From contig CATNEN010000031.1 in NCBI GenBank assembly GCA_950097015.1, positions 1,054,001 to 1,118,000 on the forward strand: a stretch of DNA of 64,000 nt. Reading direction: 5' to 3'. This DNA comes from Macrostomum hystrix (Eukaryota > Animalia > Platyhelminthes). Below the pieces are notes generated by a model. That model worked only from the letters and a program-made list of their open reading frames with translations, was not told the DNA's origin and made no database searches. This document shows, in pieces, positions 29,007-62,800 of this stretch. The position numbers and the translations under genes were made by a program. The stretch's first letter is position 1. Every line of letters starts with the position of its first letter.

Positions 29007-31311
29007 CTTTAGTTTAAAGACTCTGAAAAAATGTATGTTTTGAACTTAAAACATTTGATTAGTGGCATGTTTGTTGTGACATAAATATTTTTTTAAAAAA
29101 TATATAAAAGGTATAGCTTTCTTTTCAAATCGCTATGTTTAAAGAAGAAGTTAATAAATTGTACTATAGCTAGCTACCTATTGCAACGATGTGTAAAGTG
29201 GTAAAATTCAAGTGCTTGAATTTATTGTAAGTATCAAAAACTAAAAGACAAAAGTAATTTGTCTTTGCTATTTAAAAAATAAGTAAAATTAAATACTTAT
29301 TTTTTATTGCATAGCTTTCACTGTAGCTATGCAAAATTTAAGAAGATGATGGATAGTAATGCATCAACAAGTTTTGCATAAGAAAACTAGTTAAATTTGT
29401 AAAAAATGGGCCTGGCAATGTGAATGTGATTGTCAGTTTATTTAAATGTGCAATCACACTTAGTCACTAAAAGTTTATCTAAAGTTAGCCAGAATATAAT
29501 TTCGTAAAAGGAGTAACAAGTGCAAAAAATAAAGGCTCGTTTGAAATAACAATAAACCTATTACAATACAGAACTACTTAGCCTAACACTAGTTGCAGCG
29601 CTTAGTCAGCAGGTGTGGTAATGCTGGGCCTCTACCATCTTTAGTCAATGAGAGCAAAAATATGAAGAATTTGTTAAACTATATCTCGATGCTTATAACT
29701 ACATTACATGTAGGTCTAACTGCTTGCGCTTAACAGTAATTTTAAAGGCCATAAAATTATCGACGGTGTTTCCTTGAAAGTGTGGAAATACTTTACTTTT
29801 GAAGTGGTATTAAGTGGCGCATAATAACAAGCTTTATCAATAGAGTAGTGCAATTTAGCTTAAAATACAAAAAGAAATAAATTTATTTATTAAAAAAGCT
29901 CAAGAATATAACATATACTTGTACTTACCTGTCACAAAAGTTTTCTACGAATTATATAAATTTAAATGAAGAACTAAATATATTTCAATTATGTAAGTAA
30001 GTTTTTAACATAAAAGTACGCTCAATAATTTTTTTACTATAAGATTGACCCTAACAGATGATTTAAAGATTATTCACTATGCGACGGAATGAGTGACATC
30101 GTTAAGCCGACTGGATCCACGATTATTATATTGTATTTTAATATTTTCTTGTTTAGTTTTAGTTTCTGGCTCTAAAAAGCTTTAATTTAAAATATATACT
30201 CTTTTGAGCAGTATTTATAGTTGTACTGTCAATTCAAATTAAAATGATTTAGTGCCACAAGCTAGGTGTTTTTGCAATGCCACATTATGTACTATAGACA
30301 GTGATAATAAACAGTTCAGGTAACTTGCTTGCTAATTTAGTATACTATATTAGGCTATATAGTATTTTCTATTTAGCCCTAATCTTTATCAAAGTTTTAA
30401 GATAAAAATAATAGTTAATATAGGATGCTAGAGTGGGAAAAATAAATTCATTTTTAGCAAGGTAAAGGTCTAGACTCTAGCTAGCTACAAATAGGCATTT
30501 TTTTTGAAATGTCGGCAATAATTTGGATGACAAAGATTATGTAAAGTATTGATAAAGTAAAAAAAAACGAAACAAATGTTGAGCTTAAAATTACAAAAGT
30601 TTTACAAGAGCTAAGATGATGAGTATTTGAGATGTCAGTGATTCTAGCAAATCATTTATAAACTTGCATCATGTTGTGTATAATATCAGTTTTTTATAAT
30701 TATTAATCCACTATAACAAATGCCCTGAGGTGATTGCATTTCAAAAGTACAACACTTCATGTCTTTAGGGTCTCACTGAAGCAAAAGAGGCCTTAGTATC
30801 AATTCTAAAGTGCAAAGAGAACTATAGGTTACAAAGGTGAGCACAAACATGCAGAGCCCACTCAGTTTTTGAGGGCAATCATTTTCAATACTATGAGTAC
30901 ATTCAAATAATTACTAAATATTATGTATTTATTAGGTAACATTACAGAGCCAACACTAAACTGCCAAATTGTTTTCTCCCTTTTGGAGAAAAAACTTTTT
31001 TGTTATTTTAGTTTTATTGTAGTTTAACCTGTATCAAAAGGTTGCATTATAAAACCTTGAATAATTTTAATTTGGTTTGTATTTAGTTTAAAAAAGTGCT
31101 GTACTTTTTATGTACTTTAGTTTCTTGTAAGTTTATGGAGTGAATTAAGTTGACTGTAGTGTGCACAGCTAATACCAAAATTTTAAGTAAATAGTACTTT
31201 GCATGTTGTATATTTGCTTTTTTATCCATTTTATATGGATTTTATTTCATTTGCGATTCCTTCCTAACTTCAAATTATTTTCGCCACCATCTCCCTGACT
31301 GCAGCCTCAGC

Positions 31312-36014: not shown

Positions 36015-39000
36015 CTAGGAACTGGCTGATGCGGATGCGGAGGCGGCAGCCCGCATCAGCTGGAGGCTCTCGTGGCAGCGGGCGCAGACTCGCACCGGCA
36101 CCCGATACTGCGGCGGCAGGGGGGCGCTGTGCGAAGAGCAGTCGGCGCAGAACACTTCGCCGCAATTGCGACAGTGATGCTGCGGCGGAGAAGGGGAGGC
36201 CAGAATTACCAAGCGAATTGTGTTTATCGGAATGTCAATGTCAATTGTCTCACCCGTCGAAACGTCAGGCTAAACAGCTTGTCGCATTGGCTGCAATGCT
36301 TAGCCTGATCGTCGCGCACCCAGACCCGGCTCCGCGTGGTCTCCTGAGACACCTGCAGGCGCTGATTGTCGCGGCCGATGTCCAGCAGAGCTGACTGCAG
36401 CTCCTCCAGCTGTCGCCGCTGGCTGGCCAGCTCCCTGTTAAGTCTGTCGCGCTCGTCGCCATCAACAATGAGGCGCTCAGTGAGGCGGCGCTTTTCCTCC
36501 TCCAGGTTGTCAACCTGGCGCTCGCTCTCTGAGGTAATTAAAAAAATGTGAATACTTAAAAACATTTACTATTAACTACTTAAAGTAGTTGTAGAAAAAA
36601 ATCAATGAATTTCCTTTATTATATCTGACTTTCTAATATCTTGTACAATTCGTCCAAGCAACTCACCTCTCCTAGTAGTATTGAGGGTCTCCGTCAAGCC
36701 TTGAATCTCGGCTCGCATGGCCTCCACATCGCGGGCCGATTCAGCCAGGCGAGCCTCGGCCACTGAAAGTTGCTCAGCCGCCCGAAGCTGCTCGGCCTCC
36801 TAAGAAGAAAAATAATTGCCGACTCAATAAAACAGTACCAGTTTAAATAAGCATTCGCTGTCGGTAACTCACCCGGCTAAGCCGCAGTTCCCGCAGATCA
36901 GCGTCCCGACTGTCGCGTTCAGCCTCGGCAGCTGACAGCCGGCCGGTCAGTTCGGCCAACTCGGCAGTCTTGGCCTCGACTGTTTGACGCAGCGTCAGCT
37001 CAGTTTGCTGCAGCAAGGCTTGGACTGCGCTTAACTCAGCTGCCCGCTGCGAATGCAGAGGGTTGGATGAGGGGGGTGAAAGTAGACTTGTTTGACCGAT
37101 CAGCGAACGGGAGTGTTTTCAACTTTTCTCAGCCTAACCAATCAGTGAACTGGAGGGTTTTCTCAGCCTGACTAATCAGTGAACTGGATGGTTTTTCAGC
37201 CTGACCAATCAGTGAACTGGGGGGTTTTTTTCAGCCTGACCAATCAGTGAACTGGAGGGTTTTCTCAGCCTGACTAATCAGTGAACTGGGGTTTTTCCAG
37301 CCTGGATTGGCTTATCTGTCATTCTTGGTACGAAAATGCATTACGGTTTTGTATATAAAAATAAAACAACAAGGAAACACTGTTTTCCCACCGCCTGCAG
37401 CTCCTCCAGCCGTGCGGTCGCCAGATTCCGCTGCTGCTCCGCCTCTACCCGCTCGGACTCCAGCTCTGCCGCGAGGCGGTCGCCGCTGGCCCGCGACTCG
37501 GCCAGGTCCGCTATCAGCGAGTCCCGCTCGCGTTGCAGATCAGCTGTCTGTTGGCGAGACGTCTCCAGCTGCGCCATGAGGGAGTCCCTCTGCTGGCCAG
37601 TCTCAGCTGCTTGCTGCTGAGCGGATGCCAAGGCTGCTGCCTTTGAGTCCAGCTCCTGGCTGACACATGTCAGCCTTTGATGCAACTCAGCCAGCTCCTT
37701 GTTTAGCGAGTCCCGCTCTTTACTGACAACAGACAGTTGCTGACGAGTGTCGGCTAGATCACCTGTCAGCGAGTCCCGCTCCTGACTGACCGTGGCAATC
37801 TCCTGACGTACTTCGGCTAGGTCCTTAGTCAAGGAGTCCCGCTCGCGGGCTAGTTCGCCAGCTGCCTGTCGCGACTTTGCAAGCTCGCCGTTTAGCGAGT
37901 CCCGCTCATGAGCGAGTTCCTCCGCGCTTTGTCGTGAAGATCCTAGCTGCAGGATCAGCGAGTCCTGCTCTTTGATCAGCCCGTCCGACTCCAGCTGCAA
38001 GCTTTTCAATTGGCTTGAAAGCGAGTCCCGCTCTACGCTCAGCTTATTCGCTTTTTCGCTAACAGCGGCAATATGGGCAGTCAGCGAGTCCCGCTCTTCA
38101 ACTAGCTTGTCCATAGCGGACCGGCTGGAAGCCAGGTCGGCAGTCAGCGAGTCCCGCTCTTCAACTAGTTTGTCCATAGCGGAACGGCTGGAAGCCAGGT
38201 CGGCAGTCAGCGAGTCCCGCTCTTCAACTAGCTTGTCCATAGCGGAACGGCTGGAAGCCAGGTCGGCAGTCAGCGAGTCCCGCTCTCTGCTCAGGCCAAG
38301 CCGAGTGGATTCCAGCTCAGTGTGCAGTGAGGCCAGCTCTTCGCCCAGCCTGCCAGCTTTCTGCTGAGCCTCAGCCAGCTGTTCAGCCAGCGAGTCTCGC
38401 TCTCGATGCCACCTGTCGACTTGGCCGTTAGCCTCCGCCAGCTGGTCTTTCAGGGAGTCCCGCTCTCGAGTCAGCTGGGCCGAGGCGTCGCGAGCGGCGT
38501 CTAGATCGACAGTCAGCGAGTCCCGCTGGCCGACGAGGCCTTCGGCTTCCAGCCTCAGAGCTGCCAGCTGGGCTGTCATCGATGCCAGCTCGGCCGTCAG
38601 CCTGTCGACCTGTTTGCCTGTCTCCGCCAGCCGGCCAGTCAGCGAGTCCCGTTCGCTAGCCAGCTGGGCTGAAGCCTCGCGAGTGGCCTTTAATTCCACG
38701 GTCAGCGAGTCCCGCTCTCCAACCAGACTGTCAGCCCGCTGTCTGGTGGCCTCAGCCTCCGCGTCCGAATCAGCCAGGCTCGACCTCAACTGAGACAGCT
38801 CCGCCTGAAAGATTGCGAGATGCCGAAACGGTTTAAACTAAATAGCCGCAATATGACATGGAGAAAACTGCAATCGCTAACCTCGTGCTTATCGCGAGCG
38901 GCAGTCAAAGATCGCTCCAATTTCTGAAGCCTCTTCTCCTGCTTGGCCATCGATTTTGACTGCTCCTGCGAAGAAAATGGACATGAACTTAATTGCAGCA

Positions 39001-42000
39001 CTGGTAGCTTCATGAACATTTCATCGCCAATGTCAGCAGCAGCAGCAGCATCTCATCAGCATCAGCATCGTCAACATGATCAGCATCAGCCTCGTCAACA
39101 TGATCATCATCAGCCTCGTTAAGATGATCATCATCAGCATCGTCAACATGATCATCGTCAGCCTCGTCAACATGATCATCATCAGCATCGTCAACATGAT
39201 CATCGTCAGCCTCGTCAACATGATCATCATCAGCATCGTCAACATGATCATCGTCAGCCTCGTCAACATGATCATCATCAGCATCGTCAACATGATCATC
39301 ATCAGCCTCGTTAAGATGATCATCGTCAGCCTCGTCAACATGATCATCGTCAGCCTCGTCAACATGATCCTCATCAGCATCATCAGCGGAGCCCGACGGC
39401 ACAAACCTGCTTCTCGCTCTCGAATCGGCTGACAGTCTGTCGCTCTGTTTCCAACTCTTCAACAAGCTGGCACCTCGCCGATTCCGCCGACTGAGCCGCC
39501 TCAGTAGCCTCGGCCAGCAGTCGTTCGGCGCCGTCCGCCCGATCGCGTTGACCGGAGAGCGCGGCGCGAAGCTCCGTCGCGGCAGTCTCCACCTGTGCCA
39601 GACGTCCCCGCAGCTCCTCGGCGAGGTTGTCTAACTCGCGCTCTCGACTGGCCGCCTCGGCAGAAGCGGCAGCCGACTCAGACTGAATCCGGTCCACCTT
39701 CTCTGTGAGCAGGCGCTCAAGGTTGCACTTTTCTGAGTAGGCGGCCTCGCCAGCTGACAGCTGCTGACCAATGGCGGAAATGGCCTGGTACCGACAGGGC
39801 ATGAAAGATCAGGTCGGTTAGAGCTCTCACTACAGGCCAATTAGCGGATTAGAGCTCTCACTACAGGCCAATTAGCGGATTAGAGCTCTCACTACAGGCC
39901 AATTAGCGGATTAGAGCTCTCACTATAGGCCAATTAGCGGATTAGAGCTCTCACTATAGGCCAATTAGCGGATTAGAGCTCTCACTATAGGCCAATTAGC
40001 GGATTAGAGGTCTCACTATAGGCTAATTAGCAGATTAGAGGTCTCATCCTACAAAGTTATGTCAGTTTAGATAACACAGAGTCTATGCTAGCAGCCGACC
40101 TTGAATATCGATTCTCAAAATAGAATATTTTTATATTAATCAATTCAGCTATGCTTCAACTGTTTAACTTACCTGCTGAAGTCTTTGAGTCTCCTCTTTA
40201 AAGCTGACGGCAGCCTCGGCAGCCTCCCGTCTCAGCGTCTCGACGCTGGCGTCGGCAGCTGCCCTGGCGTCGCGCTCGGCGGCCAGTTCAGATCGTCGGG
40301 CGGCCAGCTCATCGCCCAGCTGACGCTCGCGCTGCTCAGCCTCACCAGAAGCCGCATCCAACTAATCGGAGTGAGCGATTAGAAATGCACAGGTGAATAA
40401 AATTCTGATAAGAAGAATTTTTTTATTTCCCAGAACCAACCTGAGCCTGAAGTCCGTCAGCCCGCTGACGCTGTACGCCGAGTTCAGCAGTCAGCTTAGC
40501 CAGCTCCTGGTCAGCCGCACTAGCCTTCTCCCTCAGCAGCTGGCAGTTCTTCAAAGTCAGAGATATAATTTCGGATTTTTTAAGCTGTGGATACAACTTT
40601 GAGTAGTGTCTAATGATGAATCCTGGGAAGATTCCAACCTGAGGAATCGACTCAAACTGTGCGATCAATCCTGGGAAGATTCCAACCAGAGATACCTACT
40701 CAAACAGTAACCAATCCTGGGAAGATTCCAACCAGAGATACCTACTCAAACAGTAACCAATCCTGGGAGGATTCCAACCAGAGATACCTACTCAAACAGT
40801 AACCAATCCTGGGAAGATTCCAACCAGAGATACCTACTCAAACAGTAACCAATCCTGGGAGGATTCCAACCAGAGATACCTACTCAAACAGTAACCAATC
40901 CTGGGAAGATTCCAACCAGAGATACCTACTCAAACAGTAACCAATCCTGGGAGGATTCCAACCAGAGATACCTACTCAAACAGTGACCAATCCTGGGAAG
41001 ATTCCAGCCTGAGATACCTACTCAAACAGTAACCAATCCTGGGAAGATTCCAACCAGAGATACCTACTCAAACAGTGACCAATCCTGGGAAGATTCCAGC
41101 CTGAGATACCTACTCAAACAGTGACCAATCCTGGGAAGATTCCAACCAGAGATACCTACTCAAACAGTGACCAATCCTGGGAAGATTCCAACCTATAATG
41201 CCTTCTCAAACAGTGACCAATCCTGGGAAGATTCCAACCTAAAATGCCTTCTCAAACAGTGACCAATCCTGGGAAGATTCCAACCTAAAATGCCTTCTCA
41301 AACAGTGACCAATCCTGGGAAGATTCCAAAACGAATTCTTTCAGACAATTCTGAAAGACAAAATTCTTCTGACAAAAGTGACTCATACTGGGAAAAAACG
41401 ATTCGCATGCAAATGTAGCTGCACTCACCCGCATTGACTTGCCCAGCGTGTCCATCGCCTCCTCGAGGCTTGCCTGAGTTCGCGCCGTCTCCGCCTCGGC
41501 GCAATCCTTGGCCGACTCGGCCGCCCGTGCTGCTTCGGCTGCCTCGGCCAGCTTGGCCTCCAACTCGGCCGCCTCGCGGCGCAGGCAGTCGGCCTGCTCC
41601 TCCAAGTTGGCCGTCATCGCCTCCCGTTCGGATAGCAGGCGAGTCATTGCGGCTTCGCGCTCGCGGATCTGCTTGACCCTGGCTGCCTCCGCCTCTGCTT
41701 CGGTCGCCGAATTGGCAGCCAACTCGGCGGCTGCTCGAGCTTCGGCCAGCTCGCCAGCCAAAGCTTCGCGCGCGGCCCGCTCGCTGGCCAGCCTGGCGCG
41801 GGACTCCTCGCGCAGGCGCGCCAGCTCCCGCTCTTGGGCCTGCGCAGACGCCGTCAGCCGGGCAATCTCATCGTCCCGCTGACGCAGCCGAAGCGACTCC
41901 GCTAAGCGAGACTCCTCGCGCATTGCGGCCGCCTGGCGATCGAACTCCTGACGCATCTCGCCAGCCTGCTGGGCGGCGCGCTCCTCCGTGGCAGCCAGCC

Positions 42001-45000
42001 GACGTCGGGCGTCGTCAAGTTCAGCGCACAAAGTCCTGAGCTCCGCCTCCTTGCTGCAGTTTGACCAGGGAGTGGACAAAGGCTAATAAGGCATGATTTA
42101 TGCACTGCAGGCACTGCAGCATTAAAGCGAGGAATACCCAGCAATAAGGAATCTGTCAATGAAGAACGAAGAAATTCGAGAATAAGTTAATGATTTTAAC
42201 TTATTAAAGAATCAGCCGAAAAAGGCAACTGTACGGAATCAACAAAAACAAACCCGTCGACAACTCAGGAATCTAAGAAGTGAAGGATGGAATCTGCCGA
42301 ATAAATTATGATACCGATGGAATCTGCCGAAAAAAGAATGGAATCTTCCGAAAAAGGATGGAATCTGCTGTATGTACTTGTAGTATGGAATCTGCAGAAA
42401 ACAGGAATCTGCCGAATAAAATATGGAATCTGCCGAAAAAGGATAGAATCTGATGAATAAAAAAATGTAATCTGCTAAATTAAGGATGGAATCTGCGAAA
42501 CCCAAGAACACTGTGAATTAAAGGATGGATCCTGCCGACAGTGAGGATCTCACCTGGCCAAGCAATCGCTGGCCTCAGCCTCTCTGGCACCGGCAGCCTC
42601 GGCAGCTGCCAGCTCCACGGCGGCCAGCCGGTGCTGTAGTTCGGCGCGCAATTCGCCGATTCGCGACTCGGCCGCCAGCTCAGACGAGCGCTTGCTGGCA
42701 GCCGATTCCTCCTGCTGCTGTTGGCGCAGCTGCTGCAGCTCGGCTTCTTGACTGCGGAGAATGAGGTTCGATGGCTCAGCTTGGAGAGCGATGTCGTTTT
42801 AATAGGAGAATAATTAATAGCTTTAGAGTTTTCTTTAGCTCACCGCTGACGGAGTTGCTGAAGTTGACTGTCCATCTCGGCTGTCAGGGATTTGCGCAGC
42901 GCCTCCAGCCGCCTGGCTGACTCGATGCCAGCGTCTTCGAGCCGGCTCTGCAGTTCAGCACTGGTCTGCTTCAGCTCCTGAACTTGCTTCCGGTGCCTGC
43001 CAGGTCAGGGGATGGGTATTTCTGATTTTCTGATTGGTCCGTAAGGGAAATTGATACAGTGCGCTGATTGGTCAGAAAAGGAATCTATCTAGGGCGCTGA
43101 TTGGCCAGTGTAAGAAACCGATCCAGTTCGCGGATTGGCCAGTGAGGGAAACTGATCCAGAGCTGATTGGTTAGTTTAGAAAACTGATCCAGAGCGCTGA
43201 TTGGCCAGTTTAGAAAACTGATCCAGAGCGCTGATTGGCCAGTGAGGGAAACTGATCCAGTGCACTGATTGGTCAGAAAGAAATTTTTTCACTTACTATT
43301 AGACAATCAGATAAATAAGGCGCACATCAAAATTTACCTTTGACTAGCCTCCTTAAATTTCTGCTCCAGCAATTGTTTTTCCTCAGTCAAAGCTTTCAGG
43401 GCTCGCTCAGACTCCCTAGCAATGGCGCGAAATATGGATTAGGAAAGTTTTTTTATACAGCAATAGAAAGTGGATTTTTTAAATTGCTCACTCGGACTTT
43501 GACTGCAGCTCAGCGCGTAGTAATTCAATCTCTTTATCCCTTCTGCAATTTTCAAAATAGTTAATCAAATCAAAGAATAACTCTGTCTGGTCAGGGAAGA
43601 GGATGTTAGAGAGGAAAATTAGATTGTATCTAGTTGCTATGCGAATCTGTCTCACCGCTTGGCATCATTCTCGGCCTTCTGTTGAAGGGCCTGCTTCTCA
43701 GACATCAGATTCTTTAGTGCCTCGTCCGCTGACCTGCAAACAAATGCGCCATGCAAAATAATACCAAAACGCATTTTTTATTTGAATTTAAAAAGTTCGA
43801 ATCTCAGCCAGTCCATGGACTCATGTGCCGAGCAATAGCTGTGTCAGTCGTCATTTCTACGAGATTCTATATATTCCCATTACTAGGGAGGGTGAGTGGC
43901 AGAGCGGTTCAGATGTACAGTGCAGATGTACAACCTGTGCGAGGTGTGTAGACTGAATTGTCTACCAGTTTAAACCATAGATAAATAAAAACAACTCACC
44001 CAGATTTGGACTGCAGCTCGAATGTTAGAGACTCGATGAGCTCGTCTTTTCTGCAAATTAGTTAAAATAGGATTTTAAATGCACCTTAGAAAGCAAATCA
44101 CAGTAGAAACACCATCCTATTTTTCCCCGGTGAAAGACCGTTGTATTTAAAGACCCCGTGCTATTTCTACTGTTAAGGGGGGTCGGTGGCAGAGCGGTTA
44201 TCGCGTTTGCCTCTCGCACCAAGGTCCCTAAGTTCGATTCCACGGCGAGGCCACATTTATTTGGGGCGCAGCCGCGGAGAGAAGGCTTGGGGGCTTGTCG
44301 TGCAATTTACGCCCTTGAGGGCCAACCTCCAAGGCACAGTGAAGTGTGTACACTGCCTGACGATGAGAAAGTCAGGGCAGATGTACACACCTGTGTGAGT
44401 GTGTGCCTGCGTACAGTATCTGAGTGCGTGTGTGCTCAGGAGTCAGCGAGATGGGTAGAATTGCCTCCTCGCTGGCTGCGGGTCTAGTGTCACTAAATGA
44501 TGTGCCATTGCCCGCAGCCCTCCTGCAATTATTATTATTATTATTATATTCTACTGTTAAGACTCAACTCACTTTTGAATCTCTTCATCTGCAATGCGCT
44601 CAGCTTCCAGCTTATCAGATTCGATTTGCTTCACTCGCTGCTCTGCGGCGCTGAAATATTTACCGAGAGAAAAACTGGCCTACTTTCAGTAGTAGTTCAG
44701 GAAATTATAGCTAATTTAAATAGATAAATCATGCATATTACTCACTCAAGCTTCGATTGCAGGCTAAGTTTCTGTGATTCCATAGCCTGGTCCTTCCTGA
44801 AATAAATGCAATTTGACCGAAGGATCAGGTCTGGGAGCTCACAAACTGACAAACAAGCCAAAAAACATGACAGAGTGAAGCTAACCTCTGATTTTTCTCG
44901 GCCATCTTTTTCTCAAACTCTTGTCTCTCATCGTTGAGTGCTTTTAAAGTACTCGCTGCGGCACTGAAAAGTTTTTTAAATAAGGATTTCAATCGTTTAT

Positions 45001-48000
45001 TAAGCTTTTTAAAGCACAAAAGCATATGCAGTCTGTGCCGAATTCATACTCAGATTGTGATTGCAGTTCCGCCTTCAACGAGTCGATTAGCTGCTGAGCA
45101 CTGCAATTGGAATGTGAGAGAAAAACACTGCTTTATCTGGTTTTTACATTTGGCTGTCCCAAAAGTAGTGTTCAAAGTAGTATGTGTCAACTCCTAGATC
45201 TTGGTGTCAACTCATAGACCTTTGTGTTAACTCATGGAGCATGGAGTCAAGTCATAGACCTTTGTGTTAACTCATGGAGCATGGAGTCAAGTCATAGACC
45301 TTGGTGTCATAGACCTTGGTGTCATAGACCTTAGTGTCATAGACCTTGGTGTCATAGACCTTTGTGTTAACTCATGGAGCATGGAGTCAAGTCAAGGACC
45401 TTGGTGTCATAGACCTTGGTGTCATAGACCTTTGTGCCATAGACCTTGGTGTCATAGACCTTTGTGTTAACTCATGGAGCATGGAGTCAAGTCATGGACC
45501 TTGGTGTCATAGACCTTGGTGTCATAGACCTTGGTGTCATAGACCTTAGTGTCATAGACCTTGGTGTCATAGACCTTTGTGTTAACTCATGGAGCATGGA
45601 GTCAAGTCATGGACCTTGGTGTCATAGACCTTGGTGTCATAGACCTTTGTGCCATAGACCTTGGTGTCATAGACCTTTGTGTTAACTCATGGAGCATGGA
45701 GTCAAGTCATGGACCTTGGTGTCATAGACCTTGGTGTCATAGACCTTTGTGCCATAGACCTTGGTGGCATAGACCTTGGTGTCATAGACCTTTGTGTTAA
45801 CTCATGGAGCATGGAGTCAAGTCATGGACCTTGGTGTCATAGACCTTGGTGTCATAGACCTTGGTGTCAAAGACCTTGGTGTCATAGACCTTGGTGTCAT
45901 AGACCTTGGTGTCATAGACCTTGGTGTCATAGACCTTGGTGTCATAGACCTTGGCGTCATAGACCTTGGTGTCATAGACCTTGGTGTCATAGACCTTGGT
46001 GTCATAGAACTTGGTGTCATAGACCTTGGTGTCATAGAACTTGGTGTCATAGACCTTGGCGTCATAGACCTTGGTGTCATAGACCTTGGTGTCATAGCCC
46101 TTGGTGTCATAGCCCTTGGTGTCATAGACCTTGGTGTCATAGACCTTGGTGTCATAGACCTTGGTCAACTCATAGACCTTCGTGTCAAAATATGGAGCTT
46201 GGAGTGAATTTATGAATCCAGGAGTAAGCTCATGGAGCTTGGAGTGAATTTATGAATCCAGGAGTAAGCTCATGGAGCTTGGTGATAAGTCTTAGTGTGT
46301 TGTCAATTCCCACTTACCGTTGTTTTTCAGTCTCGGCTGCGGCTTCAACCGTTCTCTTGTCCGCGGTGAGCGAGTCCAGACACTTTTGACTTTCACTTGA
46401 AGAAAATAAAAGCAAGATACAACAATTTTTTAAGACAATGAATTTGGATATTTTCTGTAATCCTAGAAATGACAGAATCTCACTCCAGTCTGCGCTGCAT
46501 ATTATCCAGTCGGTCCGTTGATTCCTTTTCGCGTCTAAAAATATAAATTCGGCTAATTTGACCAAAAAAGAAATTTATGAAAGCGGAACTTTTTCATAAA
46601 GAGCCAAAATTCGCACCTGACAGATTCCTCTTTGAGGCATTCGATTGCCTGCCTCTCGGCAGCCAGTGTTTGCTGTGCTTCCTCTGCTAGCCTGCTTATT
46701 TGTTACATAAGAATTTCAGTTTTAAAAGTGCGTCGAAATAGAGAACAATTAAAAGGCACGAAGGCATGTACACCAGAACGTAAGGATGTGGTCAGACAAT
46801 GTACTTGTAATAGGGGGGTTTCACGGAGAGTACTTTGAAGGTAAATGGCGGTCGGGGTGTGGGAGAGTGTACATTGGAGGTGAATGGCGGTCGGGGTGTG
46901 GGAGAGTGTACATTGGAGGTAAATGGCGGTCGGGGTGTGGGAGAGTGTACATTGGAGGTGAATGGCGGTCGGGGTGTGGGAGAGTGTACATTGGAGGTAA
47001 ATGGCGGTCGGGGTGTGGGAGAGTGTACATTGGAGGTGAATGGCGGTCGGGGTGTGGGAGAGTGTACATTGGAGGTGAATGGCGGTCGGGGTGTGGGAGA
47101 GTGTACATTGGAGGTGAATGGCGGTCGGGGTGTGGGAGAGTGTACATTGGAGGTGAATGGCGGTCGGGGTGTGGGAGAGTGTACATTGGAGGTGAATGGC
47201 GGAAGCACTTACGCAGTTTTAGCTAGCAAATCCGCTGTAAGCTCTTCAATTTGTTGATCCTTACTGTAAGTAGTGAATGTGAGTTTTTGTTGATAATAGA
47301 GTTTGTTTCAGCTGTAACAAATTATTGCTCACACGCACTTCTGAATTTCGAATTTAATTCTCGTCTCAATGGCCTGCTTCTCCTCAATGAGGCGTTGAGT
47401 TGACCGCTCAGCTTTTCTAAAAATATTTTTGAATTTTTTGTTTTTATTCCCGATGCAAAAAGCACTTTTAAATAAAGTTAAAAGACTTACTCGGCCACAG
47501 ATTTCAGTTGGTCTGTAAGCGAGTGAATTGTTTCATCTTTTCTAAAACCATACATGACAGAAACGGTTGATTAAACATTTTATAGAGTAAAAACAGCATT
47601 AAGGTTCATATTTCAGTAGCTTACTCTACTAGTTTTTTATTCAAATCGGCTATGGCGGCAGCAGCCGCAGCTTCTGCTTCCTTGACGTCGGCATTTGACG
47701 CTGCAGTGTCGAGCTTGACGCCGGCCCTGATGAAGTCGCTGGTGAGATCCGGTGGTATCTCAATATCGGCATAGCTGGTAAGACCGTTGCTGTCAGCCGA
47801 TGGACCGTTGGCAGGTACCTGACAGTGAGACAGTGCCTGGTTTAACCTACAAACTTGCATCTGGCCTTTGTTAACAGTAGAAAGACCAACCACGGGAGGT
47901 AGTTCAAATACCCACATTCTACCTAAATATTTAACTAATCACCATGAAAATCCAGAACATAAACTGAAATTTTCCGCTCTATACGATGAAACAGTTAGTT

Positions 48001-49985
48001 CATCGTACAGGGCGGAAAACTTTGATCCATATCGTGGACTTTCACGAATATCGGTCATTCTGTTTGGAAGCCATCGTGAAGTAGGCATTGGGTATTTTTG
48101 AAATACTACCGTGTTTTCCTCAGGGGGGAAAATAGCATGCTATTTCTACTGTTAACCAATACACTTGCCCAGCGGCGAGCCACATCTTCAGTCATTATAG
48201 GTCCTCTTTTCAGCCAATTTAGGTCCACATCTTCAGCCAGTTTAGGTCCACATCTTCAGTCACTTTAGGTCTACATCTTCAGCCAGTTTAGGTCCACATC
48301 TTCAGTCACTTTAGGTCTAGATCTTCAGCCAATTTAGGTCCACATCCTCAGCCAATTTAGGTCCACATTTTCAGTCACTTTAGGTCCACATCCTCAGCCA
48401 ATTTAGTTCCACATCCTCAGCCAATTTAGTTCCACATCCTCAGCCAATTTAGTTCCACATCTTCAGCATACATTGACTTCTCTTTCTTTATCAAAGTTGG
48501 AAGCAACCTAATAGCAATTGATACTGCTTCAAAACAACATCATAACCAAACCTTTAGCAGGTCCTGCTGTTGCAACAGCTCTGTCTTCAACTGTTCAATC
48601 GTGTCAATCATGGCTCGTTCCTTCTGGTTGAATTCATAGATCAAGGCTTGCTGCTCGTGCAGGGCGTCCTTATGCTGCTGGTCCAGCTGTTGCGCCACTA
48701 TAAAACAAATTGCTGAATAAACATTCGATCACCCTAAGTATTATTCGAAATCAAATAACAGCAGAAACTTGGTCACCTACGCAGCGCTTTGCTTTCATTT
48801 GAGGCCAGCAGTTGCTGCTCAAGCAGGAAAATTTCTTCAGAGGCCTGAAAACGATAAAAATGAAAGAAAATGTGTAGGAAAACATGATTGAAAAGTCTGC
48901 CAACAGGTGGAAACTCACGTTATTGTTATTAGCCGAAGCCGCGCCAGCACTGGCCAATCGCTGGCTCAACTCCGCATTCTCCAACCTCAGCAGGCGCACA
49001 GTTTTCTCTAGGTCAGCTAAGCTTTCAGCTTTGCCAGATTGTTGCTGATCGAAGGCGCGATCGAACCTGCGTATCCAAGAACAGTGCCAAAGTGAAAACA
49101 CTTTACTAAAGACTGTGATTGTGTTAAAATTACTGATCTCACCATTCCAAAAACAAGAGAAGTCCATCTCACGGTTTGCCTCTCCACATTCCTACCCCGA
49201 GACATCCACCTCACGGTTTGCATTCCACATTCCTACTCCAAGAGACGTCCACCTCACGGTTTTCCCTCTACATTCCTACTCCAAGAGACGTCCACCTCAC
49301 GGTTTGCACTCCACATTCCTACTCCAAGAGACGTCCACCTCACGGTTTTCCCTCCACATTCCTACCCCGAGAGACGTCCACCTCACGGTTTTCCCTCTAC
49401 ATTCCTACTCCAAGAGACGTCCACCTCACGGTTTTCCCTCTACATTCCTACTCCAAGAGACGTCCACCTCACGGTTTGCCTCTCCACATTCCTACCCCGA
49501 GAGACGCCCACCTCACGGTTTGCCTCTCCACATTCCTATCCCGAGAGACGTCCACCTCACGGTTTGACCTCCACATTCCTACCCCGAGACGCTCACCTCA
49601 CGGTTTGTCCTCCACATTCCTAACACAAGTGAAGTCCATATTAATCTAAATGGAATTATGCAAGCCTCAAGGCCCTGGCTCACATAACATTGGCCTCAGC
49701 GGTGGCCAAAGAAGACATCGAATTGCTAATCGAAGCAGTGGACGGCGAGGCTGTTCCAGCCGTCTGCTCCGCCTCGTCGGCTGAATGCGCGGCGAGAAAG
49801 TGATGAGTGAGAGCCTCGGCTGTGCCAAATTTAATCATGCAAGTCGGACAGAGAAAGCCCTCAACCTGGGACGACACTGTGCTGGGACCGCCGCGCTGCG
49901 CTGTTGATGCGGCCGACGGTGCGTCGCCGCCGCCGCCGCCTGCTTGCGATTTCGGCTTGGCCTTTTTTAAAAAGTTGGACAGCAT
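36015..49985 (-). CDS. EEA1: Early endosome antigen 1 orthologue (N-terminal C2H2 finger, very long coiled coil, C-terminal FYVE), 31 exons, about 1879 aa
   Basis: N-terminal [26 protein letters not shown]; C-terminal [10 protein letters not shown]...VWVRDD...[13 protein letters not shown]...RVC (FYVE). Hand-spliced exons: 49985-49684, 49066-48919, 48844-48781, 48697-48552, 47818-47625, 47541-47491, 47416-47339, 47263-47213, 46691-46617, 46534-46484, 46395-46318, 45100-45050, 44963-44886, 44796-44746, 44650-44573, 44050-44000, 43733-43656, 43542-43492, 43415-43338, 42996-42844, 42751-42554, 42053-41429, 40539-40441, 40361-40173, 39784-39407, 38965-38882, 38804-37392, 37046-36873, 36799-36667, 36528-36254, 36179-36015. 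All GT-AG, phases consistent, 5640 nt in total. Confidence 0.88.
37100..37305. repeat. Degenerate ~34-bp intronic minisatellite (TTCTCAGCCTGACCAATCAGTGAACTGGAGGGTT)
   Basis: About 6 units in an EEA1 intron. Confidence 0.8.
39045..39385. repeat. 24-bp intronic minisatellite (TCATCAGCATCGTCAACATGATCA)
   Basis: Lies in EEA1 intron 38966-39406; stop-free in several frames. Confidence 0.9.
39818..40045. repeat. 31-bp intronic minisatellite (GAGCTCTCACTACAGGCCAATTAGCGGATTA)
   Basis: Period 31 (39821, 39852...). Confidence 0.92.
40610..41330. repeat. 46-bp intronic minisatellite (AATCCTGGGAAGATTCCAACCAGAGATACCTACTCAAACAGTAACC)
   Basis: Period 46 (40681, 40727...). Confidence 0.94.
43040..43275. 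repeat. Degenerate intronic repeat with CTGATTGG and AAACTGATCCAG cores
   Basis: About 6-7 diverged units in an EEA1 intron. Confidence 0.7.
44100..44173. mobile_element. Short internally deleted MITE-like copy (ACAGTAGAAA...TTTCTACTGT)
   Basis: 10-bp perfect terminal inverted repeat shared with the copies at 47874 and 58401. Confidence 0.6.
44178..44548 (+). mobile_element. Full-length tRNA-derived SINE with (ATT)n tail and 13-bp target-site duplication
   Basis: Pol III A box TGGCAGAGCGG 44187-44197; B box GTTCGATTCC 44232-44241; 3' stem GGCTGCGGG/CCCGCAGCC (44474-44482/44511-44519); ATT tail; TTCTACTGTTAAG at 44165-44177 and 44549-44561. Confidence 0.88.
45195..46285. repeat. Compound intronic minisatellite: 15-bp unit (GTCATAGACCTTGGT) punctuated by a 40-bp block
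   Basis: TGTGTTAACTCATGGAGCATGGAGTCAA recurs at spacings of 100, 100, 115, 100 and 115 bp, followed by a pure 15-mer run. Confidence 0.93.
46838..47202. repeat. 39-bp intronic minisatellite (GAATGGCGGTCGGGGTGTGGGAGAGTGTACATTGGAGGT)
   Basis: About 9 near-identical units; source of the 13-aa repeat ORFs. Confidence 0.95.
47874..48151. mobile_element. MITE-like element with ACAGTAGAAA terminal inverted repeats and an internal 21-bp-arm hairpin
   Basis: TTAACAGTAGAAA...TTTCTACTGTTAA; imperfect longer TIR (TTCAAATACCCAC / GGGTATTTTTGAA); hairpin 47970-47990/47999-48019; homologous to 53007-53352 and 58401-58616. Confidence 0.75.
48165..48470. repeat. 23-bp intronic minisatellite (TTTAGGTCCACATCTTCAGCCAA)
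   Basis: Period 23 (48241, 48264...). Confidence 0.9.
49165..49620. repeat. 43-bp minisatellite in EEA1 intron 1
   Basis: CCACCTCACGGTTT recurs every 43 bp (49206, 49249...). Confidence 0.92.
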
Positions 49986-50230
49986 CTCGCTGCGGCCACT
50001 AATTATAAGGGACTTTTTTAAAGCTAGAAGAGAGAAATTATATAACCAGCGTGGTGAGTGGGTGCAACATTCAATTAATATTGAGTTGATTATATTAAAA
50101 ATTATATATTTTATATATATAATTTAGACAAAGACTGCGTACAGCTGTTCAGTCCGTGGACTGGGGAGGCCGCCACACCAAACAAAGCTGGTGCTGGTGA
50201 ACCATTTTACAGCCAGGTGAACTGAAGCCC

Positions 50231-53373: not shown

Positions 53374-54756
53374 TCAAAGGTCGTCATCTGCCTCCATCTT
53401 GACGTCCTCGTCGACATCGCCGTCATCACCGACGCCGACTCCGGCGCCACCCCCAACGCCGGCAGAGCGGTTTCGATGAATCTTGGCGTGCTTAGCTAGG
53501 CCGGAGCAGTCAAAGAATGCTTTGCCGCAGTCGCCGCACTCGAACGGCCGCTCGCCGGTGTGCAGCCGCATGTGCATGCGCAGGTAGTCCTTGCGCACGA
53601 ATCGCTTGGCGCACACGAGACAAACGTGCGGCTTCTTGCCCGTGTGATTGCGCATGTGCCTGGCCAGGGCGGAGTTGTAGGAGAATCTCTGGCCGCATCG
53701 GTTGCAGGCGAACGGTTTGACACTGACACTGCTGGCGCCGCCTGCATTGTCGGCATTGACGGCGCCGACGCTGCTCAAGTTTGGCGTCGCCTGCGCGGCT
53801 CGCCTCTGCTGCTGCCGCTGAAGTGGATCCAACTGTGGACGCAGCGGACGATGCTGCGTCAGCGGCGGTGGCGGTGGCGGAGAACGCATCAAAGGAGGAT
53901 CCAGAGGTTGGACTAGCAGACGCAGCGAGGGCGGCGGCGAGGGAGTGGGAAAATTGATGGGCTGATGGGCGACCGCCACGTGCCTGGATAAGGAGGCCTC
54001 GTCACGGAACCGCTTGCCGCAGTTTGGGCAGGGAAGGAATACGGCCGCTGCGGCAAGCTGCTGCTGATGATGATGCTGCTGCTGATGCTGATGACGATGG
54101 CCACCAGAGGAGGACCCCATGTGCACTTTTAGATGAGCCTTGAGGTGTTCCCTACGGGGAAAGCGCCTGTCGCACTGGCTGCAGGCGTAGGGCAGCTCGC
54201 CAGTGTGGCTACGCCTGTGGCGAACCAGGCTGGACCTGGCCGTGAAAGTCTTGCCGCACTCGTTGCAGGTCAGCATTTGTTGGCGTCGGCGCGCTGGTGG
54301 CGGCGCCCGGACAGGCGGTAGAGGCAGCTTGTTGGGCAGATGAAGCGGCGGAGGCGGCGTTGGAGGCGGCGGAGCAGGCGGCGTTGGAGGCGGTGGCGGT
54401 GGCGAAATTGGCGGCGGCGATGCTGGCGGAGGCGACGAAGAGGCTTTGATCTCTGGCTCAGCCGGCCAGAGCATCGACTTTGGCAGGCGGCTGTCGTCGC
54501 CGCCGACTGCCAACAGTTGAACTTCCAGTTCGTCGGCTGAGGCGGCGCAAAATTCTAGGAACCCCAGCCGAAGGCAGGGGTCATCTTCGTAGTCGCAGTC
54601 GCGAGCGAGGTCCAAGAGACGGGCGCGCCAGCTAATGGTGGCACTTCGATTGTTTTCAGAATCGGTTTTATCTGCCGAGCCGTTACTGTCGCTGTTGATG
54701 TTATTGTTGCCATGGTGACCGTTGACGGCCGGCAGCGACGGCGAGGATGATTCGGT
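53374..54756 (-). CDS. C2H2 zinc-finger protein (six fingers in a 2+1+3 arrangement, Pro-rich linkers); 5' exon not resolved
   Basis: Canonical fingers with TGELPY, TGKKPH and TGERPF linkers; acceptor AATTTGCAG|ACC at 54756; the ORF-track N-terminus is a 16-bp repeat. Confidence 0.85.
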
Positions 54757-54777
54757 CTGCAAATTTAGGACAGGAAA

Positions 54778-54988
54778 CCAGGTAGACAAGGAGACAGATA
54801 GACAAGGAGACAGGTAGACAAGGAGACAGGTAGACAAGGAGACAGGTAGACAAGGAGACAGGTAGACAAGGAGACAGGTAGACAAGGAGACAGGTAGACA
54901 AGGAGACAGGTAGACAAGGAGACAGGTAGACAAGGAGACAGGTAGACAAGGAGACAGGTAGACAAGGAGACAGGCAGACAAGGAGATA
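54778..54988. repeat. 16-bp minisatellite (GTAGACAAGGAGACAG)
   Basis: About 13 units just upstream of the ZF acceptor. Confidence 0.93.
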
Positions 54989-55294
54989 AGAAGTGAGAAT
55001 GCCTTATTTTGAAAGTGCATAAAAATAAATAAATAAAATGAATTCTACAACATTCAGGTTCAATCACTTTATGATCCTTCAGAATTCATTGTTGAATTTT
55101 ACTATCATATTTGTTTCAAGTATTCTCTAAATATAATAAAAGTAAAAAAACTTCATATCAACAAACGGCTTAAATGCATAGCAAATGCAGTTTAGGCCTA
55201 CCATAAAAGACAATGTGTTTCTTCATTGCGTTTTGCAATCAAGCAAGAACAGACAAAAAAGAATAAACTCTCTTTATGAACATTATTAGAATCA

Positions 55295-55478: not shown

Positions 55479-57203
55479 CTATCGAACAAAGTCCAGCACC
55501 AATTCGATGTGTCGACAGTTTGGAAACAGGTCAATCGGCTGACAGCCGGCTAGTCGAAACGGCCTGCCCAGACCCTCCGGCATCATCAGGCGCAGAAAGT
55601 TGTCAGTTGGCTGACCCTCCGGCCGGCAGGAGATGTACACAACCCGGTCCACAGCGGCGCAGGCTCGAATCGCGGACACGGAATTATCATCAAGACCGTC
55701 GCGAGCTGGATTGAGCACGCAACAGACGGTCGGACTAGTGTCGACGGAGAAATGCAGACGCTTGGAAAAGAAATGCTCGGCCGACTCGCAGTGATATTCG
55801 TAGGCATCATTTGGCAGCTCGTTGAGCAGGGCATTGTCCAAGGCGTCTCGCACAGCCGACGGATTAGCGTCAAAGCCGATGACTCGATCGAATTGGCGAC
55901 TGTCGAACAGCACCTGGCCGATGACGCCGGTGCCGCAGAAGGCGTCCAATAGGAGGCGCGTCGGACGGTCGCATCGGCTGGCACTGGCCTGATCATTGGC
56001 CAGCAGCTGGCGCAGATAGCTGTACAAAGTCTCAGCCGCGGCTGTGTTATTCTGGAAGAACGAATGCGGTCGCACTTTGAAGCGTCGATCTAGCAGGCGC
56101 TGCAGCAGAGAGTCGCGGCCAAACAGGTGACGCGGCTCGGCCAGCTGGAAGCAGTCGCTGCTGGCCTGGCAGAAGCCGGACACCAGGTTGAGACCGGACC
56201 GCAGCACCAGGGGGAAGAATTTCTCAGTCTGTGTCAATTGAGCAATATGCATTGTAAATGGCGTGAATCATTTGGGAAGACGCAAGTGGGCTTATGTAAG
56301 GTTGCTAAGGACCAGGGGTCAGAGGACTGACCAACATTATGATAGACTAACACACTAACAGAACACACACACACACTAACAGAACACACACACTAACAGA
56401 ACACACACACACACTAACAGAACACACACACTAACAGAACACACACACACACTAACAGAACACACACACACACTAACAGAACACACACACACACTAACAG
56501 AACACACACACACACACACACACCAACAGTCGCAAGCACTCACCAGCTCCGCTTGGATTCGCTCCTCGACACCGGCCGGCAATTGGGCGTGATAGCAGAC
56601 CTCCAGCATGAGCTCCGCCTTCTCGTTGGTACGGGCCACCATTCCGGCCCAGGCTCCGTTGGGATTTCTATACCGATCGTAGGGATCGAATTCGCTCTCG
56701 CCGCTGCGTACAAAATGTGTGAACAATTCGAACGATCGCGCATGTATCGGACAGGTGCTAGACAGGTGATCAATGGCGAAACCCACGCGTCGGTGAGGAA
56801 AGCCGGGCTCAAACATTCGCACCTGCATACTGTGGCCAACAATCGGCCAGCCGTCTGGCCCATACAGAGCGGAGGTGCCGTTACGATTGCGTTTGAACCA
56901 GTCGCTGCCAGCTGGGTGAAGCACGGCGGGCACATGGCACAGCGACTGGCGCCGACTGTCGGAACTGCCGCTTCGGCCGGGGCTGGCGTCGCTCAGGCAG
57001 TTGGCCAGTCGGCTGATGATGCTATCGGCCCGTCGATGCTTCAGCTCCAACTGGGCCGGGTAGGGCACCCAAAGCAGAGGCTGGACGTGCCGGCGGATGC
57101 GATCCAGAGGGCGGGATATTCGCGACAGGGGCAGCGAGGCGCGGAATGGTCGACGCCGTATAGCGGATGCGGCGCCGACTGCGACGGCGGCGGCGGTTGC
57201 GCA
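55479..57203 (-). CDS. TRMT2B: tRNA/rRNA m5U methyltransferase of the TRMT2B type; exons 57203-56544 and 56228-55479; start codon unresolved
   Basis: PYPAQLELK, FKVRPHSFFQNN, LDAFCGTGVIG (SAM motif I), VLNPARDGL (NPAR as recalled for TRMT2B, not the DPPR of TRMT2A/TrmA), YISC (catalytic Cys), PIDLFP..RHIELV; Arg-rich, acid-free N-terminus resembling a mitochondrial presequence; phase-0 GT-AG intron. Confidence 0.82.
56345..56522. repeat. CTAACAGAA(CA)n compound microsatellite in the TRMT2B intron
   Basis: Direct inspection. Confidence 0.9.
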
Positions 57204-59805: not shown

Positions 59806-62800
59806 TCAAGCAATCAGATCAACAGCCGCAGCGCCGCCTCGGTCAGCAGCATGCTCTCCAACGGCATCAGTGGGGGCTAGGCAGCGTACATTGCGCACAG
59901 CCTGCATCAGCTGTGGAAATTCTGGCTCAGTGAGGTGCTCACGAAACACCTGGGCAAAATCATCCAGCTGGAATAGCGTAGCAGTGACGGGTGCCGCCCG
60001 GGTGGTCAGCCTGAGAAAGTAGATGTCCAGGATGAGAGCAGTGAAGGTGTTCATGATGATGATAGCGCTAACCAGCCACCAGACAGCAAAATAGAGCTTT
60101 GAAGCCTGACCAGCTGCACCCGCAAAGGTGTTGGCAATCACGTGCCAATTGTTGACAATCATCAGATTCCACAGGACAACAATAGCCGATGCGAAATCGT
60201 TAAAGTGCAATGAAGCATAATTAAGCCTGGCGTAGGAGTCGCAGGCAGTCTGGTTGGTCAGCGCATCGGCCGTGATTCGATTGTTGAATAATTGGATACC
60301 AATCACTGCGAACACATAGTAGGCTACGGCAAGTACGCCTAGAAAGAATCTCAGATTAGCCAGAATGTCGCGCATTGAGTCCCAGACAATCTTGATAGAT
60401 TTAAGCCTAGGCACAATGCGCAATACTCGCAGTACAATCAGAATATTTGTTAGACGCATTAGCAGGTGTAGAGCCAAGGCCTGCTGGGCAGTTTTAGTTA
60501 GCCGGGACCAGCGCAAACCCAGGTAGGCAGCAGACAGGCCCAGCAGCAGTAAAGTGCAGCCGCCGTAGAAGGTGTGTTCCCGTTGCTGGGAGAAACAGCG
60601 CCAGCCTAGAGCCCACAGTAGCAACAGGTGTTCGACAGTATAGAAGCCGACAAATGCATAGTTGACTATCATAGCCTGGTGTTCGGCCTTGTACCGATCA
60701 AATTTAGTTGCTACGGGATCTGAGGCCAGGTGCACTGACACCTGAATTTGATGAATCAATAACATTGTCATCAGTGCAATATTGTTAGCAATAAAATATA
60801 TAAAAATACTTACCGCAATCAAAGCGGTATTGGCGGCGCAAACGGCAATGGAAAACCAGGAGAAATATTTGTGAATTACAAACCGCTGCAGCTGCCGCGC
60901 TGGCGGCCAGGCACGCTCTCTGACCTGATGCACCTGCGGAGCCAAATTTGGGCAGCGGGGAGCGATTAATATGGCCTAGGGATAAATCACTGCACCGCGA
61001 GAGTGAGACCAGGGCTTAGGGAAGCACGGGGAGTGAGATGCAGGCTAGATGCAATGAAGGGAGAGACTGAGATGTAGGCTAGATGAAATGAAGGGAGAGA
61101 CTGAGATGTAGGCTAGATGAAATGAAGAGAGAGACTGAGATGCAGGCTAGATGAAATGAAGAGAGAGACTGAGATGCAGGGTGGGTGAAATGAAGAGAGA
61201 GACTGAGATGCAGGGTGGGTGAAATGAAGAGAGAGACTGAGATGCAGGCTAGATGAAATGAAGAGAGAGACTGAGATGTAGGCTAGATGCAATGAAGAGA
61301 GAGACTGAGATGTAGGCTAGATGCAATGAAGAGAGAGACTGAGATGTAGGCTAGATGAAATGAAGAGAGAGACTGAGATGCAGGGTGGGTGAAATGAAGA
61401 GAGAGACTGAGATGTAGGCTAGATGCAATGAAGGGAGAGACTGAGATGTAGGATAGATGAAATGAAGAGAGAGACTGAGATGCAGGATAGATGAAATGAA
61501 GAGAGAGACTGAGATGTAGGCTAGATGAAATGAAGAGAGAGACTGAGATGTAGGCTAGATGAAATGAAGAGAGACTGAGATGTAGGGTAGATGAAATGAA
61601 GAGAGACTGAGATGTAGGCTAGATGAAATGAAGAGAGACTGAGATGTAGGCTAGATGAAATGAAGAGAGACTGAGATGTAGGCTAGATGAAATGAAGAGA
61701 GACTGAGATGTAGGGTAGATGAAATGAAGAGAGACTGAGATTTAGGCTAGATGAAATGAAGAGAGAGACTGAGATGTAGGCTAGATGAAATGAAGAGAGA
61801 CTGAGATGAAGGGTAGATGAAATTAAGAAAGAGACTGAGATGTAGGGTAGATAATATGAAGAGAGAGACTGAGATGCAGGGTAGATGAAATGAAGAGAGA
61901 CTGAGATGTAGGCTAGATGAAATGAAGGGAGAGACTGAGATGTAGGCTAGATGAAATGAAGAGAGAGACTGAGATGTAGGCTAGATGAAATGCCGGGAGA
62001 GGCTGAGATGCAGGTAAAGCTTAGTGGGAAATCACTACACACCGATTTAGGTCGGGGCAGATCCAGAACGGCGAATCCGCGCTTAAAATCGTTAAAGCTC
62101 AGCAGCGCACTGTGGCCGGCGAAGTTCTGTAAAAAGGAAATATTGCAAAATGCATACGAGCATATAAGTACGTATATATCGAACTCGTTTAAGCGAAGCA
62201 AATAATCAATAATCAATAATATCCGTTCTGGAGACCCACTCGAAAGAGGCCACGGGAGATAACAGCGGACTATTATTAAAGAGGCCTTGGGAGATAACAG
62301 CGGACCGTTATTAAAGAGGCTATGGGAGATAACAGCGGACCATCTTCAAAGAGGCCATGGGAGATAACAGCGGACTATTATTAAAGAGGCCTTGGGAGAT
62401 AACAGCGGACCGTTATTAAAGAGGCTATGGGAGATAACAGCGGACCATCTTCAAAGAGGCCATGGGAGATAACAGCGGACCATCATTAAAGAGGCCTTGG
62501 AAGATAACACAGACTAGGCCGTACAGCCGCTATTGTCCGCTGGCTAGCACAAAGAAGCATCAAAATGGCACCTCTCTGAGAATGGCGAGTCGCCACTCGG
62601 GCAGTCGAAGACGGTCAAGCAGGGCCACGACGCAGACCAGTGGGACAGTGGCAAAATCTGGACGCTCGCATAGCAACCGTTGTTTACGCCTCAGTAGCTG
62701 CTTCAGTCTTTTAGACTTGTCGAAACTGCAACAGCAGTGCAACGCCTGAAATGCGGCCAGCACGCCAAGGCGACGCCGAAAAAGGCGCGTCTGCATCGAG

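Follow-up and report, generated by a model that had tools for sequence, protein, structure and literature searches.

Seven tandem two-exon modules in the coiled coil of a predicted EEA1 gene of the flatworm Macrostomum hystrix

EEA1 is the best-studied coiled-coil tether whose length and flexibility perform mechanical work, which, according to a modelling preprint, relies on deviations from a regular heptad pattern (10.1101/2020.05.04.076919). How the coil of such a tether is lengthened, and whether its length can be set by splicing, are questions raised by a gene of the flatworm Macrostomum hystrix, located on contig CATNEN010000031.1 of the assembly GCA_950097015.1 within a stretch of 64,000 nucleotides (nt; positions 1,054,001 to 1,118,000 of the forward strand) that we refer to as the window and whose first letter is position 1. 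Between 47541 and 43338 on the minus strand of the window, the gene contains 14 consecutive short exons of alternating size, all separated by introns of the same phase. In our judgement, it is probable that the gene represents a single-copy EEA1 ortholog in which the coil has been enlarged by old duplications of a two-exon unit, now present in seven copies, that these exons are constitutively spliced and that they add approximately 45 nm to the tether.

The exon array and its modules

The 14 exons were delimited from stop-free stretches and a reading of the splice sites, and measure 51, 78, 51, 75, 51, 78, 51, 78, 51, 78, 51, 78, 51 and 78 nt. These lengths and the associated coordinates match exactly those of the initial annotation, which was made from the letters of the window. 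All 14 exons lie between an AG and a GT, start on codon base 3 and end after codon base 2, so that all introns are in phase 2. When joined, the exons form 900 nt, or 300 codons, that are open throughout and contain the module peptides quoted in the annotation. Exons 1 to 6 are placed by their AG/GT sites and open frame: module 1 consists of exon 1 (47491-47541, 51 nt) and exon 2 (47339-47416, 78 nt, with the donor AA/GTGCGT, where the slash marks the cut), module 2 of exon 3 (47213-47263, 51 nt) and exon 4 (46617-46691, 75 nt), and module 3, the most diverged, of exon 5 (46484-46534, 51 nt) and exon 6 (46318-46395, 78 nt). The same succession of a 51-nt and a 78-nt exon forms module 4 (exon 7, 45050-45100; exon 8, 44886-44963), module 5 (exon 9, 44746-44796; exon 10, 44573-44650), module 6 (exon 11, 44000-44050; exon 12, 43656-43733) and module 7 (exon 13, 43492-43542; exon 14, 43338-43415). 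A tandem acceptor, aag/cag/ (46691-46697), was observed at exon 4, with two sites 3 nt apart that are both in frame. It is possible that this exon, the only one of 75 nt, also has an in-frame form of 78 nt that would start at 46694 through use of the upstream AG.

The RNA with which exons 7 to 14 were compared consists of transcript-assembly contigs of four runs that belong to one study on a single organism. Of the words sampled from a 10-kb stretch, 36-38% are found in these runs, roughly the proportion of the stretch that is exonic. The interval selected for the comparison, 43290-45150, was picked to avoid long tandem repeats. In each run, this interval is spanned by one contig (3.7-4.1 kb), with joints at 43414/43491, 43542/43656, 43731/43998, 44050/44573, 44650/44746, 44795/44885 and 44963/45050. 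All seven joints read CT..AC on the plus strand and correspond to the predicted introns 7 to 13 within the ambiguity of the cut. Exons 8 to 13 have RNA joints on both sides (for exon 8 in 4 runs), and the contig pieces for exons 8, 10, 12 and 14 are spaced 50-53 nt apart, which means that the 51-nt exons sit between them. The outer ends are set by piece ends and bin depths, at 45100 for exon 7, where the depth stops at about this position beyond the joint 44963/45050, and at 43338 for exon 14, which has the joint 43414/43491 and a contig piece that ends at 43337/8. In each of the four runs, exons 7 to 14 are all carried in a single contig, and no exon-skipping joint is listed over these exons in the contigs of the four runs. 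In the main transcript, the array exons are probably spliced constitutively, as observed for exons 7 to 14. The check that the annotation had proposed, a comparison of the predicted junctions with RNA, thereby gave an exact result for introns 7 to 13 and showed the inclusion of exons 7 to 14, the part of the array that it covers.

At the protein level, the array consists of seven tandem modules of 43 amino acids, each encoded by a 51-nt and a 78-nt exon (75 nt once), and is located in the coil shortly behind the N-terminal portion of the protein. A comparison of the 299 amino acids with themselves at a lag of 43 gave a mean BLOSUM62 score of 1.09 and 29% identity, as against -0.24 +/- 0.12 in 2000 shuffles (z = 10.8), and the 43-residue period suggested previously is thus real. 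The next-best lags were 86, 129 and 171, while lags at multiples of the heptad scored at most 0.17 and all others at most 0.37. Pairs of modules in register share 3-20 identical residues out of 43, with modules 4, 6 and 7 being mutually closest. Furthermore, in leave-one-out profiles built from six modules, the left-out modules 1, 2, 4, 5, 6 and 7 scored 17.5-42.9 bits, as compared to a maximum of 16.7 bits among 233 windows of the remaining coil, and these six modules also scored higher than shuffled modules. The profiles thus identify six of the seven modules as homologous, whereas module 3 fails. The same division is seen in the pattern K-D-x-x-I-x-x-L-x-x-x-L-Q-S-K-S that had been ascribed to the short exons in general: it is clear in modules 1, 2, 4, 5, 6 and 7 and nearly missing in module 3. 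In every copy, the introns hit the same two places, one in the codon of module position 18 and the other in the codon at the junction with the following module. As in tandem exon duplications elsewhere, neighbouring exons are equal in length and phase, and the homology between copies is above background, with the exception of module 3.

The short exons are 45-57% identical at the DNA level, with a fraction of 0.31 of the third codon positions being identical, and an all-against-all blastn comparison of the 13 introns found them to be unalignable, save for one short stretch (33 and 26 nt) common to introns 10 and 11. This saturation of third codon positions and introns points to duplications that are old, and the array should be common to related species. 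The cassette DNA is unique within the 220-Mb assembly, and a search with the seven-module profile over the rest of the protein yielded no significant further copies. One weak match (i-E 0.022) was to exon D1 of the gene model (42844-42996, 153 nt, bounded by phase-2 introns on both sides), which carries AELQSRLE at about the place where the short-exon motif would fall and may represent a degenerate eighth module that lacks the inner intron.

Gene structure and predicted identity

Our gene model comprises 31 exons that run from 49985 to 36021 on the minus strand and encode approximately 1878 amino acids, with an ATG at 49985, a stop region near 36020, GT-AG boundaries at every intron and no internal stops. 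The first coding exon, U1 (49684-49985), contains the start codon and a C2H2 zinc finger that was recognized by a structure match and a weak Pfam C2H2 match. Of the solved structures, the one that it matches best is 3MJH_B, the Rab5-binding finger of human Early endosome antigen 1 (E 7.2e-5 over 31 amino acids; chain SSEGFICPQCMKSLGSADELFKHYEAVHDAG). At the opposite end of the gene, exon D11 (36254-36528) encodes the pre-FYVE coil together with the initial third of the FYVE domain (WxxD ... RR), and its best match is to residues 2-85 of the EEA1 structure 1JOC_A (84 amino acids, E 2.1e-11), followed by RUFY1 as the next family at 1.6e-4. The remainder of the FYVE domain (HHCRNCG ... RVCARC) comes from the last coding exon (36021-36179), with the stop codon at or just past the low end of this exon. 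The Pfam FYVE domain scores 49.6 bits in this exon and another 20 bits in the preceding one, and the matches of the last exon in PDB include EEA1 in 1HYI and 1JOC. The motifs WVRD, RRHHCR and RVC are present, and an intron splits the second of these into RR and HHCR. The finger and the FYVE domain are separated by a central coil of approximately 1700 amino acids, which has a strong hydrophobic periodicity of 3.5-3.6 residues and many matches to coiled-coil families in Pfam. The EEA1-type C-terminal exon, represented by D11, occurs once in the 220-Mb assembly, which holds more than two dozen FYVE loci.

Judging from the architecture and from both ends of the protein, the gene is predicted to be a single-copy EEA1 ortholog, and binding of Rab5-GTP and phosphatidylinositol 3-phosphate (PI3P) as well as endosome tethering are its predicted roles. 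The annotation had also named the gene EEA1, and the name agrees with an EEA1-like finger (3MJH_B) at one end, an EEA1-like pre-FYVE coil (1JOC_A) and FYVE domain at the other, and a long coil between them. Three other FYVE loci in the genome (C7:1835507-1835635, C37:2852053-2852178 and C38:24856770-24856892) give matches that start at profile position 22-24, like that of the last exon of the EEA1 gene, which suggests that several genes may share an intron position within the FYVE domain.

If the gene model is right, three of the runs have contigs whose starts precede the ATG by 9, 39 and 57 nt (49986-50045 in the window), and an acceptor-like site, ttctag, is located 38 nt upstream of the ATG. 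Trans-splicing of a leader is common in flatworms, and both observations would fit such an event.

Origin of the array and alternative explanations

We hypothesize that repeated unequal recombination within introns copied an intron-bounded unit of two exons, that each copy would have inherited the intron positions and phase 2 of this unit, and that satellites and a young dispersed repeat may later have inflated several of the introns. This is in line with the proposal in the annotation that an exon pair was duplicated in tandem along with its introns, which then diverged, and the homologous modules, matching intron positions and unalignable introns are what such a history should leave behind. 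The gene model contains 17 consecutive phase-2 introns, which begin at the donor of exon U5 (47625-47818, phase 0 to 2) and end at the acceptor of exon D3, with D2 (42554-42751, 198 nt) as the last exon that has phase 2 on both sides. Since an in-frame duplication of an intron-bounded unit needs flanking introns of equal phase, each copy inherits this phase. The phase-2 run would thus be an automatic by-product of tandem duplication, and selection for skippability is not needed to account for it. Phase symmetry has been tied to modular exon evolution in general surveys (PMC3632108).

We also considered the possibility that the symmetric exons are regulated cassettes, such that, depending on the tissue or stage, the skipping of single or paired exons would yield EEA1 tethers that are graded in length or flexibility. 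The earlier statement that any subset of exons can be removed in frame follows from plain arithmetic, since the 14 array exons as well as D1 and D2 are multiples of 3 between phase-2 introns, and the tandem acceptor of exon 4 could gain or lose yet another codon. Same-phase introns are already accounted for by duplication, however, and the splice sites are ordinary, with donors of the type GT[AG]AG and pyrimidine-rich acceptors. Nor did the comparison of introns with each other reveal a conserved element that might regulate splicing, and the loss of an exon of 17 or 26 amino acids would disrupt the hydrophobic register of 43/12 residues that is described below. Assembled contigs drop rare variants, such that minor isoforms are invisible to this type of data and could have escaped; what the contigs do contain is exons 7 to 14 complete in one contig per run. 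We thus consider regulated skipping to be improbable, and tuning by splicing is unlikely to be a major feature on the present RNA. The suggestion in the annotation that splicing could set the length of the tether is not supported by the four assemblies, in which all eight testable exons are included in one contig, with no skipping joint listed.

Another scenario is that the 43-residue repeats first formed an intronless array, which acquired its introns afterwards through parallel gains at equivalent proto-splice sites in each repeat. Intronless growth of repeats does occur in this gene, as seen in the large repeat exon D8, and many of the exon boundaries resemble proto-splice sites (AG/G or GA/R). 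Yet at least 13 independent gains would be required, at exactly two positions per module and always in phase 2, and with a nucleotide identity of 45-57% the modules are too diverged for identical target sites to have persisted. The duplication of one unit with its introns is far more economical, and we give very little credence to late intron gain. Equally remote, in our opinion, is the idea that the gene encodes another FYVE coiled-coil protein, which shares the end domains of EEA1 by chance. For the 84 amino acids that span the pre-FYVE coil, EEA1 in 1JOC is the best match, with an E-value that is better by 6 orders of magnitude, and the N-terminal RUN domain of the RUFY proteins is absent here. 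These matches should be set against the shortness of the finger match (31 amino acids, E 7.2e-5), a slightly higher score with RUFY1 than with EEA1 for the part of the FYVE domain in the last exon, and a central coil without detectable EEA1 relatives.

Admittedly, several observations weigh against an EEA1 ortholog with seven old, constitutively spliced copies of the unit. Module 3 scores only 6.5 bits in the leave-one-out analysis, which is within the null range, and it is counted as a module because of the sizes and phases of its exons. For exons 1 to 6, the junctions are placed by splice sites, an open frame and the homology of intron positions, and the RNA, which covers introns 7 to 13, consists of assembled contigs from one study that are blind to minor isoforms. 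Finally, the comparison was made within this one gene, and it is from the saturation seen there that the age of the array and its lineage are inferred.

Coil geometry, surrounding sequence and known systems

In a Fourier analysis of hydrophobic residues, the array has its maximum of power at 3.57 residues, close to 43/12 (3.58), with almost none at 3.50, while the periodicity in exon D8 peaks at 3.51. A crude sliding-window assignment of the register placed a shift every 21-22 residues or so, which is twice per module. The description of the module as six heptads plus one residue in the annotation is correct as arithmetic, but a period of 3.57 throughout the array is not that of heptads interrupted by a single defect in each module. 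In our reading, the array is a non-heptad coil of regular build in which every 43 residues contain twelve core positions, which would be equal to three heptads and two hendecads. Reduced left-handed supercoiling is predicted for periods between 7/2 (3.50) and 11/3 (3.67), and with a hydrophobic period of 43/12 the coil of the array is expected to show less supercoiling than the downstream heptad coil encoded by D8.

At 0.1485 nm per residue, and assuming a parallel dimeric coil, the array would contribute approximately 45 nm and each module 6.4 nm to a whole coil of about 250 nm. Human EEA1 has approximately 1400 amino acids and a coil of 1275 amino acids that measures about 222 nm (bioRxiv 10.1101/2020.05.04.076919, 10.1101/2022.07.18.500463). 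In a modelling preprint, the flexibility switch of EEA1 appeared only with discontinuities in the coil (bioRxiv 10.1101/2020.05.04.076919), which makes a mechanical role for the periodic non-heptad segment conceivable. A more far-reaching hypothesis is that the array represents a lineage-specific and mechanically distinct non-heptad segment beside the Rab5-binding end, and that changes in the number of modules, by evolution or by regulated skipping of exon pairs at a low level, would shift the reach of EEA1 in steps of approximately 6.4 nm and alter the switch from stiff to flexible. We find it doubtful that this is the case.

The composition of the coil breaks sharply within the gene. The array exons (43338-47541) are rich in Lys, Glu and Gln and have a GC content of 39-55%, whereas the downstream exons (36021-42996) are rich in Ala and Arg, almost without Lys, and have a GC content of 61-70%. 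Among the latter is D8 (37392-38804, 1413 nt, minus strand), which encodes a GC-rich heptad coil made of ERDSLT units of approximately 21 amino acids. Inside D8, a coding repeat of 63 nt (38076-38286) is present in 3.3 copies with 97% identity and yields three identical units of 21 amino acids; it represents recent growth of the same coil within an exon, by slippage or recombination. The coil has thus been enlarged in two ways, by old duplications of an exon pair and by recent growth inside an exon. A search with D8 (461 amino acids) against 1.84 billion protein representatives matched generic coiled-coil proteins only, with a best identity of 34%, and none of these matches had the FYVE motif RRHHCR or RKHHCR. 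From the lack of any D8 relative above 34% identity it follows that close relatives of the protein of this species are missing from that collection.

Nine of the 13 array introns are 74-113 nt long, and the four long ones are introns 3, 6, 10 and 11. Intron 3 (521 nt) is filled by a minisatellite with 9.7 copies of a 39-nt unit (46826-47202) and intron 6 (1217 nt) by satellites with units of 15, 20 and 40 nt (45183-46282). Most of intron 10 (522 nt) consists of a dispersed repeat of approximately 370 nt (44175-44547), while intron 11 measures 266 nt and has the short stretch in common with intron 10 mentioned above. For the repeat in intron 10, at least 3988 candidate copies were found in a first look at the genome, and the copies that were scored are 95-98% identical. 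A search of this repeat with ARAGORN identified no tRNA-like gene, and it looks like a young short interspersed element that is active or was so recently. In the transcript contigs, this repeat reaches a very high depth, in the thousands. Elsewhere in the gene, nearly every long intron is filled by a minisatellite of its own, at 39055-39385, 39818-40046, 40619-41329, 43030-43283 and 37124-37304, with units of 24, 31, 46, 34 and 34 nt, respectively. Further away in the window, reading frames on the minus strand at 59809-63039, 55482-56267, 53377-55044 and 25982-29045 resemble an ion-channel-like multi-pass membrane protein (with an exon of 389 amino acids), a methyltransferase-like protein, a multi-C2H2 zinc-finger protein with linkers rich in Pro and Gln, and a multi-pass transporter-like protein.

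The locus provides an RNA-backed illustration of how a tether can be lengthened by fixed two-exon blocks of 43 amino acids that carry a non-heptad period, and the defined modules form a natural series to delete or multiply in tests of how coil length and periodicity affect tethering. We found no EEA1 exon-pair array, 43-residue period or EEA1 exon skipping in the full-text literature, a weak result because most gene-structure data lie outside papers. Like human EEA1 (3MJH, 1JOC, 1HYI), the predicted protein has an N-terminal C2H2 finger, a very long coil, a coil of the EEA1 type immediately ahead of the FYVE domain and, at its C-terminal end, a FYVE domain bearing WxxD, RRHHCR and RVC. It differs from the human protein in that the flatworm model is longer, with approximately 1878 rather than 1400 amino acids, and has a GC-rich, Ala- and Arg-rich coil downstream that lacks close relatives in the collection searched; the seven 43-residue modules with a periodicity of 3.57 may be a further difference.

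In terms of evolutionary mechanism the array is ordinary, and the tandem duplication of exons is well known. As in other examples (PMC3632108, PMC9741552), adjacent exons are homologous and equal in length and phase, which is what unequal recombination within introns predicts. A difference is that the duplicated unit is here a pair of exons rather than one, and unlike the mutually exclusive exons described previously (PMC9741552), the copies are included together, as seen in the contigs over exons 7 to 14. Likewise, the array resembles other non-heptad coils, with stutters and hendecads, in that its hydrophobic period is between 3.50 and 3.67, and families of hendecad proteins have been mentioned (PMC11676326). 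What sets the array apart from these coils is a period of 43/12, recognized here from the sequence periodicity, that is repeated seven times and aligned with pairs of exons.

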